Below are positions 1,681-23,409 of a stretch of 64,000 bases of DNA, piece after piece. Below the pieces are notes generated by a model, which saw only the letters and a program-made list of their open reading frames with translations, did no database searches and was not told where the DNA came from. Location of the stretch: sequence record MF498774.1; one strand, given 5' to 3'. The translations under genes were made by a program, and so were the position numbers. Within the stretch, counting starts at the first letter, position 1. Every line of letters begins with the position of its first letter.

Positions 1681-4600
1681 TTAACTGATCCAAACAAAGT
1701 CAACAGACTTGGTAGTTGGGTTTGCTCTTATTTCTAAGAATTCTCCGTTACCAACTGCTATCCTAAGTTTATTTACGGTTGTTGTTCCATTCAGGTTAGA
1801 ATCACCATTTACGGTTAGCGCTTTCACCGAATTGATGATAAGCTCGCCTGTCATGGTATCACCACCCTTAAACACACGAGAACCAGATGTAGTATTCATA
1901 TCGTCTATCACGGAATCCAGATAGTCTTTACGAATTGCATCATCAGGATCAATCGGTAATGCACTTCCTATCTTAACTTGAGCATTTACCTTTAGGTCAC
2001 CATTCGATTCAAACGATGATGTATTTGATGGCGAAGATAGACCATTAGGGCGAATTTGTAATCCACCAAGAGAACCAATATTCAAACTCTCGTTTGCGTT
2101 TATGGTTATCCCACTCTTAGAAGTATTACCCATCCATATATTTTGGACACCGCTGTTCTTAAAATATGTAGTATTAACAAACGTTTTGTTACCGGTAATA
2201 GTTTCTGCGAAGTTACCCGGTCCACGAACATATCTTTCTTCTGCATAAGCAAAACGAACAAGGTGGTTCCCAGACGTTGGGTTCTGTCCGCCGTTTTGAA
2301 CTTGGTTGGTGAATATTGCATTACCATCCCGTTCAACAGTAAAGATCCTATAGTATCTACTGTTTTCGTCCATTGCGTTAAGGATTAATGGGCCATCAAT
2401 CGTGTTTACACCAAGATCTAAAAACGCATTGCTACCCTGACGTTTCCACTGGATCATGGATACATGAGATGTAGTCGATGTTTCGTTGAGATAGAAATAA
2501 GGTCTAATCTTCTCAATAGACGGATTTGCAGTAAATGTCATTTCGCCGGTTATTGTTTGTGCAATAGTACGACGAACCCAATCAGTTGAAGGTATACGGT
2601 TTCCACCAACCTCCATTGCACTGGCACTTACAGCCACAGCTTTAAGTGGTAGGAAATTAGCTAATGCTGTATTCAAACCTCTTGGAGAAACCAATACATC
2701 CCCATGTGCGTAACCGGTTAATGCTCTTGTAGAACCAAGAATATCATTACCTTCAAACACAGAGTTAGCAGAGTTGTTGTTTGACAATATTGCAGTAATA
2801 CCAACACCATATCTAGTATCAGTCATTCTATAACCCGCACTATTTCTAGAGCTGGTTAGAGCGGTTAACGGGGTTAGGTATTTTGTGTTGTTAGTACCGG
2901 TATCAACCTCAGATTGAGTTGCAATTTGAGACAAACCCGTTTGGGTCGTAGTCGCTAGTCTTGCACTCAGTTTCTTTGGAGTTACGATAATTTCGTCATT
3001 TGCGGTTCCGGTCATATCGTTTACTTCATTCTGAGTTGCAATTCTAGCAGTGCCTCGTTGTGACTCAGTAGGAATAACGATATTAAAAGATTGACCTTCC
3101 CAAATATTACCAACGGTTCTAAGTCCCGATGTATCGAACACAGTCAGTCTTTCTCTAGCTAACCAGTTACCAAATGTTTTTGGAGTAACAAACCATTTGT
3201 CATGTAATGTTCCCGCATCTACTTCCGCTTGTGTTGCGGTTTCGGACAAACCCCAACGGGTTTCGGTTGCGGTTCTACTTACAAGTCCTTTTGCGCTAAC
3301 GTGTACGTTGTCACCAGCCGGTGGTGTGTTGCTTAGTACTTCTGTTGATGTTGCCGCCCTTGACAACCCGGTTAGTGATGCTGTAGCCTGACGTCCTTCT
3401 AGGGTAGTTGCGGTTACTACTAGCGCACCGGTTGCGGTGTCAGCAGTACCTGTGTTAACCTCCCCTTGGTTGGCAATGTACACCATACCTTGTGAAAACT
3501 CAGTTGCGTTTTTCTCAAATAGAGTTTTCGGAGTGATTACCTTGCTATGATCGTTATAATCATAAACACCTGTACCCGGAGTTGTTCTTGTGGTAGGCTT
3601 AGTTCCATTAGCTGAGACAAGAGCCGATAAACCAGTCATAGACTCGGTGGCGACTCTACCGTTAAGGGTAGATGGTGTGACTGCAACTTGAGCCCAGTTT
3701 TCACCGGAACCGGATTGTGCGTTTGCTTGACTCTGTGTCGCTACCTTCAACAACCCACGCATTGTTGTTGTAGATAGACGGTCGTTCAACAGGAACGGAC
3801 TTATTGCCACCCCGGACCATGCTTCATCGGATAGGTTTCCACTAACTGCCTTGGATTCACCGTTAGATGCATATCGGGTGATACCACGCCGGACGGTACT
3901 TGCTGTTTTGTTAGCCAATGTTTCAGCGGTAACAAAATCCTCACAATCTGGGTTTTGACCGGTTGTGATCTCTTCTTTGTTCTTGTTTACAGATGATTGA
4001 GACGCAATGGCAGCCATACCATAAAATTCTGGTACATTTCGGTCTACTCGATACGGAATCTCAGACATAGTAACAACAGACCATACGTCTTTACCAGAAC
4101 CAAGAGCATTTGTGAAGTACACAAATTCCCACTGTTCCCCACGGTTTTGGATATCAAATGACTGAGTTTTTACGGTATTTGATTCCATATTAGCAAGAAA
4201 ATCGCGGTATGCGCTGATCCGGGGGTTCATTAGAGTGTTACCATCGGGTACAAAGAAATCATTTGTACTGGATGTATCAATATTTAAAGTTAAAGTGGAA
4301 CCCCTTTTCATGTATCGTGTGTCTATAAAGAAGCTATCACCTCTTGCCGCATCACGAGGGAATGTAATGTTGACAGTCGACGGAGTTTCAGTATAAACTA
4401 CTAGTCGGTCGTTTGGTTGACCTAAGTATGTGGATGTTTTGACACTTTTCCAACGACTAAGGTTGTCAGCGTCGAAAACTCTCCAAGCGTTGAGGGTTGA
4501 ATCAAAGACAAACATACCCCAATCTGTAGAATCAAAAACGACCGTTTTCATTGGGGTCGACCCATATTCAACTATGATGTTGTGGCTACTACCCGGATGA

Positions 4601-20080: not shown

Positions 20081-20800
20081 ATGAAAAAGCGGTTTGTTAG
20101 TTTTGCTATCTTAGGTGCTATGTGTGCTATTAGTGTGGTACAGGTTAATGCGGCATCTTTTGACTGTGAGAAAGCATCGAGTAAAATAGAGCGAACTATT
20201 TGTGCAGACGAACGGCTGAGTGAATCAGATGAGAAACTGAATTCTGTTTATAAAGAAGTTCGAAAAATTAACCCAGCGATCATCGAAGGTCAGCGAGATT
20301 GGGTCAAACGTCGTAATAAAGCATCTTCAATCGAAGAACTTGACCAACTCCATGAAACACGGATCCAAGAACTTGAATCCATGCTTAAACCAATCATCGA
20401 ACAAGATGATGAAAGTGTATTCACCCGTTCTGAACAACCAAAAATCAAGAAAGTGTCTGTTGTTGAAAATAAAAACGTAGTGAAAGACATTAAATATTAT
20501 GTCGATGAAGTACAACGCACTGGTGGAATGACTAATAAGGATGGATTCTTTTCTGCAAAAGTAGTGGGAAAGGGTTATCCTAGTTGGTTAAAAGATTGTG
20601 GGATGGTTGTAGGAGAAGCACACGATACAAAATATTTCATTAATGACGCCAATAAATATGGTCAATTTGATATCTATATTCAGAACGAATTGAGCTTTAA
20701 AAATGTTGCTGCGAACATGATGATCAAATATATGGTGGATTCCGTAAAAGGTGATTTGGGTCTTGTTAAAATCATGTGTGATTCCGGAGAATTGTATTAA
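20081..20800 (+). CDS. Secreted LprI/DUF1311-like (lysozyme-inhibitor family) protein
   Basis: Signal peptide MKKRFVSFAILGAMCAISVVQVNA, then ASFDCEKAS..IERTIC...LS..DEKLNSVY...QRDWVKRRN. Confidence 0.75.
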   Translation: MKKRFVSFAILGAMCAISVVQVNAASFDCEKASSKIERTICADERLSESDEKLNSVYKEVRKINPAIIEGQRDWVKRRNKASSIEELDQLHETRIQELESMLKPIIEQDDESVFTRSEQPKIKKVSVVENKNVVKDIKYYVDEVQRTGGMTNKDGFFSAKVVGKGYPSWLKDCGMVVGEAHDTKYFINDANKYGQFDIYIQNELSFKNVAANMMIKYMVDSVKGDLGLVKIMCDSGELY

Positions 20801-22226: not shown

Positions 22227-22250
22227 AGGTGGTCGAGAGATCACCTTTTT
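22227..22250 (+). terminator. Terminator with GNRA loop
   Basis: AGGTGGTC-GAGA-GATCACCT-TTTT. Confidence 0.7.
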
Positions 22251-22283: not shown

Positions 22284-22312
22284 TTGCAATCAAAGTATAA
22301 AATCTCTATAAG
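22284..22312 (+). promoter_or_regulatory. Sigma70-type promoter upstream of the structured element and SLOG gene
   Basis: TTGCAA-17 nt-TATAAG with an AT-rich UP region. Confidence 0.55.
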
Positions 22313-22319
22313 TATTTAT

Positions 22320-22416
22320 ATAGAAGATCTATAATTAGAAAGAGTGTGAGCGAAGCGAACAGGCGGCTACGCCGTCTCACTACGTTCGAGATCTATTTAT
22401 TTATAATGCTATTTAG
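22320..22416. other. Structured non-coding element (GC-rich mini-hairpin cluster between AGATCTAT direct repeats)
   Basis: GCGAAGC (22350-56), GGCG-GCTA-CGCC (22362-73), GTGAG/CTCAC (22346-50/22376-80), CGAAC/GTTCG (22356-60/22384-88) and AGATCTAT at 22325 and 22389, inside very AT-rich DNA. Confidence 0.7.
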
Positions 22417-22434: not shown

Positions 22435-22995
22435 ATGAAAAGGAAAATTGTAACTCTTATAGGAACCAGATATCCTAACGAAGAGTATAAACAGTTGATG
22501 ATAAGAATTGGAAAAGCTTTTTCTGATCGTGGTTATGGTGCTAGATCTGGTGGTGCCATTGGTTCTGATACGCTTTTCCTAACCGAATATGACCCAGCAT
22601 TAACCGTTGTATATCGTCCTGATGATAGACCCGGTTGTGTTAATGTCAAAAATCATGAAAACTATTATGAATTTGAATTGCTTGCTTCCCGTGTTCATGG
22701 GTCTGGTATTGGATGGGAATTTATGCCAATTGGTCACCAAGAATTACACGCTAGGAACGTTCCTCAAGTTATGGGATTAAATCTCAAGTCTTATTCTGAC
22801 TTAGTTGTATTTTGTGCGGAAGAATCGATACATGGTACTGTATCTGGTGGAACTGCTACTGCGGTTAAAATAGCAAGAAGCCTAAATATACCTACCCTAA
22901 ACATTATGAACCCAGTTCAAAGATCAAAACTTTGTAAATGGTTGGGTATTGATGATATACCAGTATTAGAAAAGGTTGACATTTTCAATCTCTAA
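22435..22995 (+). CDS. SLOG-superfamily (DprA/Smf/YpsA-like Rossmann) protein
   Basis: TLIGTR, SGGAIGSD, HARN..V.G and SGGTATAVKIAR...IP motifs. Confidence 0.8.
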   Translation: MKRKIVTLIGTRYPNEEYKQLMIRIGKAFSDRGYGARSGGAIGSDTLFLTEYDPALTVVYRPDDRPGCVNVKNHENYYEFELLASRVHGSGIGWEFMPIGHQELHARNVPQVMGLNLKSYSDLVVFCAEESIHGTVSGGTATAVKIARSLNIPTLNIMNPVQRSKLCKWLGIDDIPVLEKVDIFNL

Positions 22996-23033
22996 ATATT
23001 GTTGTGGAATAATAACAATAAACGAGGTTGAAA

Positions 23034-23378: not shown

Positions 23379-23409
23379 AAAAGCCCCGACCTAAAAAGGT
23401 TGGGGCTTT
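23379..23409. terminator. Bidirectional terminator between the RyR gene and gene 24
   Basis: AAAAGCCCCGACC-TAAAA-AGGTTGGGGCTTT. Confidence 0.8.

Follow-up and report, generated by a model that had tools for sequence, protein, structure and literature searches.

A stand-alone SLOG-domain gene paired with a RyR-domain gene in Aeromonas phage AS-yj: a candidate for counter-defence

The SLOG-RyR locus of phage AS-yj

The window, that is the whole stretch of DNA which was analysed (64,000 nucleotides of the record MF498774.1), belongs to Aeromonas phage AS-yj, a T4-like myovirus of about 230 kb. An ATG-start open reading frame within it encodes a SLOG-domain protein; the frame is deposited in the record as a 'hypothetical protein' with identical coordinates and 100% identity. 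It is followed on the same strand by the gene of a small RyR-domain protein, and the features which delimit these two genes are given in Table 1.

Table 1. Features of the SLOG-RyR unit in the AS-yj window
Feature	Position	Strand	Basis
Terminator-like hairpin ending the upstream unit (inh and a 73-aa ORF)	22227..22246	+	8-pair stem followed by a T-run
Promoter and GC-rich-hairpin cassette before the SLOG gene	22284..22416	+	TATAAT at 22330 and 22402
SLOG-domain protein, stand-alone, 186 aa (PHROG 768, annotated 'DprA-like')	22435..22995	+	HMM, alignment, AF2 model, structure searches
SLOG-RyR spacer, 38 nt, with a GAGG ribosome-binding site and without a terminator	22996..23033	+	
RyR-domain protein (RyDEP family), 114 aa	23034..23378	+	PF02026
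Strong terminator-like hairpin closing the SLOG-RyR unit and facing the convergent head genes	23380..23409	+	13-pair stem with 7 GC pairs, T-run

The genome of G001, the nearest relative, contains six matches to the cassette before the SLOG gene, and a version of the cassette stands before the same gene in phage ZPAH1, where the promoter part is kept and the hairpin sequence is different yet still forms a GC-rich hairpin. A bacterial-type promoter in a T4-like phage suggests early transcription, and the SLOG gene is probably expressed early from this promoter and co-transcribed with the RyR gene, the timing being read from the promoter type. A further element, (A/C)TAAATA, straddles the SLOG stop codon (positions 22985-23000) and is conserved in five diverged SLOG-RyR loci (L009:4940-4955, L027:3960-3975 and L004:590-605 among them). 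Its sequence is similar to the T4 late promoter, TATAAATA, and a separate late transcription of the RyR gene may take place as well.

The gene is situated among head genes, and packaging of the SLOG protein into the head was therefore considered. It is unlikely, because the first strand of the fold starts at residue 5 and an N-terminal targeting peptide would find no space before it; the gene's own bacterial-type promoter is a second counterpoint. Further upstream in the window, at positions 20081-20800, a 239-aa protein is encoded in which an N-terminus like that of a signal peptide precedes an LprI (PF07007) domain.

The product of the second gene scores 41.6 bits with the RyR model, whose cut-off is 27.4, and it also matches the PDB entry 35TM, which is RyDEP, with an E-value of 5.5e-4. 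Phage RyR-domain proteins of the RyDEP type hydrolyse the ribose-ribose bond of 2'cADPR/3'cADPR or sequester these molecules with nanomolar affinity, and by either activity they defeat Thoeris (PMC13232231, a preprint of May 2026). Their catalytic dyad consists of H75 and D117, the ligand is contacted by W78 and H100, and no SLOG or DprA-like neighbours are mentioned in the preprint (PMC13232231). The AS-yj protein keeps H60, W63 (+3) and H85 (+25), with spacings identical to those of H75, W78 and H100 in RyDEP. At H+42 it carries Tyr102; when nine phage RyR proteins are aligned, the other eight all have Asp at this place, which corresponds to the D117 position of RyDEP by identical residue spacing, not by direct alignment to 35TM. 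The Asp-to-Tyr change points to a member of the family which is altered, either towards a sponge or in some other way, and as judged from these residues binding is likelier for the AS-yj RyR protein than glycosidase activity. The SLOG protein itself has no homology to RyDEP, Tad1 or Tad2, all of which sequester or cleave cADPR molecules, although a functional analogy with them is possible. A search of G001, the nearest relative, gave no Tad2-like gene.

Motifs, fold and relation to known SLOG domains

The earlier note had described the protein as a stand-alone SLOG domain with a complete set of four motifs and no effector domain, and each of these points was borne out. The motifs IGTR (residues 9-12), SGGAIGSD (38-45), HARN (105-108) and GGTATA (138-143) are all present and coincide with the conserved columns of a 91-sequence family alignment. 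The columns G39, A41, G43, D45, R107, G138, G139 and T140 are invariant in this alignment, and G10, R12, S38, N108, Q111, G114, A143, A147 and N156 are conserved in at least 90% of the sequences. Four conserved sites of the pocket are formed in this way, namely the loop after strand 1 with G10 and R12, the glycine-rich loop with the GxD element (S38-D45), the group R107/N108/Q111, and G138-G139-T140. All three loops which characterise the SLOG superfamily are found here, that is a polar or glycine-bearing loop after strand 1, a glycine-rich loop after strand 2 and GG(T/S) before the last helix. The motif match is far beyond chance, as the PHROG 768 model covers the protein over its full length with an E-value of 2.2e-51 and 1,578 cluster representatives are recovered at E<=1e-3.

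An AF2 model, built on the same 91-sequence alignment, has a pLDDT of 94.9 and a pTM of 0.89 and consists of one Rossmannoid domain (residues 1-173) with a short, floppy tail of low confidence. It is a three-layer alpha/beta sandwich around a five-stranded parallel sheet (strands 5-10, 35-38, 57-61, 123-127 and 154-156). In structural searches the top of the list was occupied by SLOG domains alone: DprA of H. pylori (Z 13.1), DprA of R. palustris (12.7), TM1055 (12.6) and the Moco carrier protein MCP (12.6), followed by ShosA (10.9), YpsA (10.6) and LOG (10.5), and lower down by the SLOG domain of ThsA with 3'cADPR (9.2) and TRPM2 (7.1). Foldseek agrees with this ranking. The assignment to SLOG is thus upheld by the five-stranded model and by Z scores of 9-13 against solved SLOG domains; the four best rows lie within 1 Z unit, and therefore structure alone does not single out a subfamily.

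The subfamily was also approached through sequence models, as the earlier note had proposed. Only DprA-type models responded to the AS-yj SLOG protein, always over its first ~50 residues. The Pfam model DNA_processg_A (PF02481), with a cut-off of 29.6 bits, scored 18.5 and covered residues 3-47 only, so that the match is below threshold; TIGR00732 gave 15 bits against a cut-off of 191, the PADLOC model of ShosA gave 19 bits, and the family profile compared with PDB sequences reached HpDprA at 27.8 bits. In the Pfam scan of the AS-yj protein, the models YpsA (PF06908), PF10686, YAcAr, LDcluster4 and STALD were not matched, and the LOG model (PF03641) had no match at E<=10. The LOG motif PGGxGTxxE reads SGGTATAVK in the AS-yj protein, without the catalytic Glu, and in the 91-sequence alignment no conserved acid is present in the helix which follows GGT. 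In the YpsA clade a GxD/E element after strand 2 has been predicted to bind the substrate (PMC6459960), and it is present here as G43-S-D45, invariant in the family; it is non-discriminating because DprA carries a GxD too.

DprA of H. pylori (4LJK/4LJR) is the best structural match, with an rmsd of 2.8 over 135 residues, and DprA and ShosA (8ZVA) have in common with the AS-yj protein the motifs GxR, SGGAxGxD, xxRN and GGT/S. The DprA chains are 216-353 aa long, whereas the structural match covers the Rossmann part only; the AS-yj protein is without the SAM domain and without the C-terminal DML1/winged-helix domain, and about 50 N-terminal residues are alignable with DprA/Smf by sequence. HpDprA contacts ssDNA through the arginines R52, R143 and R170, and arginines of the R52 and R143 type are used by ShosA as well. 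Two of these three have motif-level counterparts in the AS-yj protein, R12 of GTR and R107 of xxRN. The setting of DprA is competence and RecA, in contrast to the ADPR-related context of the AS-yj family. With both the Pfam and the TIGRFAM score below the cut-off and the Rossmann domain alone being present, a bona fide DprA was rejected.

To our knowledge DprA has no catalytic activity. D45, which is the sole invariant acidic residue of the family, is also conserved in DprA, and so nothing argues specifically for catalysis.

The SLOG domain of ThsA was compared through BcThsA with bound 3'cADPR (7UXS). It has the same fold, with 129 residues aligned, at 8-11% identity to the AS-yj protein and without an HMM match. 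The ligand contacts of BcThsA are S290, R371, K388, G399 and E403; binding is through the loop after strand 1, through an Arg and through the Gly-rich loop on the C-terminal side, and these are regions which are conserved in the AS-yj family. The post-GGT helix, which in LOG holds the catalytic Glu, has no conserved acid in the family; with regard to E403 this is a comparison at the level of regions and not of mapped residues. Unlike in ThsA, the AS-yj SLOG domain is fused to neither SIR2 nor any other effector.

Distribution of the family, the gene pair and the fusions

The protein matches the PHROG 768 HMM with 175 bits, and residues 1-173 of 186 are aligned to positions 1-182 of 191 of the profile. 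This family is annotated as 'DprA-like DNA recombination-mediator protein', and the AS-yj protein is a member which has the size, the invariant motifs and the mostly stand-alone build in common with the rest. A word-based homologue search reached only 7 close relatives, and an exhaustive search was hence used, whose cluster representatives (clusters at 50% identity) are nearly all of 160-205 aa. A search for related loci from the single SLOG protein returned two near-identical loci only. Relatives were found in 963 out of a total of 50,697 phage records; most of these phages are large, with hosts in Escherichia, Klebsiella, Pseudomonas, Aeromonas and Vibrio (mainly gammaproteobacterial hosts). 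In the ESM Atlas the named clusters nearest to the protein are viral to 60-96%. The isoelectric point of the family is neutral to basic, being 7.7 for the query with a median of 8.3. The AS-yj SLOG protein belongs to a distinct family, seen mostly in viral records, whose nearest relation within SLOG is the DprA Rossmann domain. The name of PHROG 768 is inherited from weak similarity to DprA, and the label of a DNA recombination mediator is not supported by the present results.

The pair of SLOG and RyR genes, with a spacer of 35-39 nt, was found in four diverged groups of T4-like Aeromonas phages, namely AS-yj/CC2/G2, ZPAH1/65, Ah1 (Cinqassovirus) and phiWae14, and in one metagenomic contig. 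Across these loci the identity drops to about 41% for SLOG and to about 32% for RyR. The small genes which flank the pair vary between the phages, from which it is argued that SLOG and RyR travel as a unit; all loci occupy the same syntenic position adjoining gp24, and the linkage may represent a single ancestral event. The linkage is also lineage-restricted, because this SLOG gene was absent from the whole genomes of five unrelated phages with RyR (Bajun, Bue1, LKA5, SeSz-1 and Kuja), the same search having recovered five out of five known carriers as a positive control. In the phage records RyR was detected in 279 as against 963 for SLOG, so that most SLOG-bearing records cannot carry RyR, and within PHROG 768 at large the RyR neighbour is confined to the Aeromonas T4-like subset. 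Both genes are present in phage DSS3phi2, at a distance of 7.6 kb.

No SLOG-RyR fusion was found among the 20 longest of the best 150 relatives, and what the longer RyR proteins (Ackermannviridae, LKA5) contain besides RyR is not SLOG, as two of them have Phage_gp49_66 there and the third has no match. In the Ackermannviridae phages SeSz-1 (L013:3452-4324) and Bue1 (L011:3503-4342) a C-terminal RyR domain is joined to an N-terminal Phage_gp49_66 domain (N4 gp49 / Sf6 gp66) in proteins of ~280-290 aa. Pseudomonas phage LKA5 has its RyR domain at the N-terminus of a 290-aa protein, whose C-terminal half has no domain match.

Fusion partners of the family were looked for in the same 20 longest proteins. 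Four carry NADAR, three carry DUF4326 and one carries DUF488-N3a with DUF7831; no nucleic-acid or DNA-handling domain was matched in these proteins. In their survey of viral NAD+/ADPR systems (PMC9503650), Iyer, Burroughs and Aravind argued in 2022 from ADPR-processing fusion partners; their prediction is that SLOG domains of viruses bind immune signals of the cADPR type or cleave them. The survey assigned a predicted role in the processing of ADPR derivatives to viral SLOG-NADAR, SLOG-Macro and SLOG-DUF4326 proteins. RyR is not mentioned in that survey (PMC9503650). Relatives of the AS-yj protein (E down to 1e-13) carry such NADAR and DUF4326 fusions, while the AS-yj protein itself is stand-alone. 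Most viral SLOG domains were put in a YpsA-like clade in the survey and few phage ones in the LOG clade (PMC9503650), whereas the AS-yj family is nearest to DprA by both sequence and structure.

The neighbours of the SLOG gene in other lineages are of several kinds. In Cronobacter phage leB (L015:1938-3552) an RNA ligase gene shares 11 nt with the start of SLOG, and a gene for NadV (nicotinamide phosphoribosyltransferase) is situated 1.3 kb downstream of SLOG; this locus may be a neighbourhood of RNA repair and NAD salvage. The T5-like phage Brizo has NAD-dependent ligase genes on both sides of SLOG, phage CHA_P1 has DNA ligase and helicase genes near it, and in DSS3phi2 a ribonucleotide reductase is the neighbour. 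RNA ligase 2 is encoded ~3 kb upstream of SLOG in the G2, Ah1 and ZPAH1 loci and is annotated under the SLOG match itself in CHI14. A Pfam scan of the immediate SLOG neighbours in five other lineages gave no matches. The nearest complete relative, G001, has one RyR gene and one Macro gene, and no NADAR, NadV or NUDIX genes were found in it. Its Macro-domain ORF (G001:C1:157277-157627, in locus L008, outside the window) lies in an open frame of 179 aa and scores 22.7 bits, just over the cut-off; it is a further candidate for an ADPR-processing gene.

Possible functions of the SLOG protein

We consider counter-defence to be the most likely role, with about an even chance; in this role the SLOG pocket binds, and possibly cleaves, an immune molecule derived from NAD+ or ADPR, alongside a RyR protein which binds cADPR. 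In this proposal the deeply conserved pocket would serve for a phosphorylated nucleotide; the molecule bound, or possibly cleaved, would be a small product of host immunity derived from NAD+ or ADP-ribose, the candidates being the signals of Thoeris/TIR systems or the ADPR released by NADase effectors; and the AS-yj RyR protein would work alongside as the cADPR binder. The proposal is plausible because the gene forms a unit with a RyR/RyDEP gene, and because the family has NADAR and DUF4326 fusions and NadV or NAD-ligase neighbours elsewhere. From this contextual evidence we infer the ligand class and the anti-defence effect. The earlier note had suggested that the phage may sequester or degrade a second messenger of immunity or a metabolite derived from NAD; such a role fits the same context, but not exclusively, since the pocket motifs are shared with the ssDNA grip of DprA. 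The idea of sequestration or degradation is already published as a prediction for stand-alone SLOG domains of viruses (Iyer, Burroughs and Aravind 2022, PMC9503650). New here are the pairing of SLOG and RyDEP genes and its conservation, the replacement of Asp by Tyr in the partner, and the failure of the 'DprA' label in tests of score and architecture. It counts against counter-defence that DprA and ShosA are the nearest characterised family when profiles are compared with sequences, that the link with RyR is lineage-restricted and may go back to one event, and that the immediate SLOG neighbours in five other lineages had no Pfam match; it counts against a sponge that the median pI of the family is unlike that of many sponges, which are acidic; the pI is nevertheless uninformative as a hint between a sponge and a DNA binder. 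A more specific form, which we regard as unlikely, is a two-part module against TIR/Thoeris immunity, in which RyR would capture 2'/3'cADPR and SLOG would be an N-glycosidase or other hydrolase acting on ADPR-derived signals, or else a sponge which takes up another signal, for example His-ADPR.

Other functions have to be weighed against counter-defence. The main rival, suggested by the similarity to DprA, is a minimal, DprA-like binder whose Rossmann domain alone would hold phage or host ssDNA, and which would modulate recombination or replication (loading of UvsX/RecA) or mask ssDNA from sensors of the ShosTA or Hachiman type. This would agree with the rank of the two DprA structures at the top of the search, with DprA and ShosA as the sole families reached by sequence, with the motif-level counterparts, in GTR and xxRN, of R52 and R143, arginines of which ShosA makes use too, with the mildly basic pI, with the DNA ligase and helicase neighbours in CHA_P1 and Brizo, and with sporadic viral SLOG fusions to HNH, exonuclease and helicase domains (PMC9503650). 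We nevertheless hold it to be rather improbable: the DprA scores are far below threshold with ~50 residues aligned, the protein has neither the SAM domain nor the C-terminal DML1/winged-helix domain, the third arginine R170 has no mapped equivalent, the fusion partners are NADAR, DUF4326 and DUF488 rather than DNA-handling domains, and the operon partner is from a family which, by analogy with RyDEP, would bind cADPR-type ligands.

The ligase neighbours raise the question of an accessory function in nucleic-acid repair, by which SLOG would act with RNA ligase 2 or the NAD-dependent DNA ligase and handle an adenylate or ADPR-type by-product, or an end modification, in tRNA or DNA repair, and not immune signals. 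The RNA ligase gene overlapping the SLOG start in leB, the RNA ligase 2 genes near SLOG in G2, Ah1, ZPAH1 and CHI14 and the position between two NAD-dependent ligase genes in Brizo are in line with such a function, as are the action of LOG-clade SLOG domains on AMP and tRNA adenines and the partly NAD-dependent RNA repair of phages (PMC9503650). The proximity to rnlB in the T4-like phages can, however, be an inherited gp24-rnlB synteny; in AS-yj the RNA ligase gene is split from SLOG by five genes and a terminator, the immediate partner being RyR and not a ligase, and the catalytic Glu of LOG is absent, so that we judge this function improbable. Very improbable, in our estimate, is a LOG-like nucleotide phosphoribohydrolase or another housekeeping enzyme of the nucleotide pool which would serve phage DNA synthesis. 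LOG and LOG-like proteins are among the structural matches (Z 10-12.6), and a ribonucleotide reductase adjoins SLOG in DSS3phi2 and a deoxyribonucleotidase is found in the wider locus; on the other side, the LOG Pfam model gave no match, the Glu of PGGxGTxxE is replaced (G138-G139-T-A-T-A-V-K145) with no conserved acid in the helix family-wide, and the phage members of the LOG clade are few (Iyer et al., PMC9503650).

Among the gene families of large phages which lack an explanation, PHROG 768 is one of the commoner, and in the literature search no experimental, biochemical or genetic work on it was found. If its members do act on ADPR-derived immune signals, the family would represent a widespread counter-defence against TIR, Thoeris or SIR2 immunity, which bears on host range and on the choice of therapeutic phages; if this holds for PHROG 768 generally, a counter-defence gene mislabelled as a recombination mediator would have gone unrecognised in about a thousand sequenced phages. 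If the two-part module exists, the phage would neutralise a wider range of immune nucleotides, and if SLOG is its enzyme, this would be a class of SLOG enzyme not yet shown in viruses. The Aeromonas pair is a compact and easily tested system, as it consists of two small genes, one of which is from a family with known ligands.

The label 'DprA-like DNA recombination-mediator' is being spread by annotation pipelines. Two deposited annotations of SLOG orthologues also deserve mention. In ZPAH1 (MW272540.1; L028:2895-3461) the PHROG 768 member is mis-annotated as 'RNA ligase'. In phiWae14 (LC778249.1; L027:3391-3966) the deposited CDS (3532-3969, 145 aa) cuts off the SLOG N-terminus, while the open frame corresponds to positions 1-175 of the profile.
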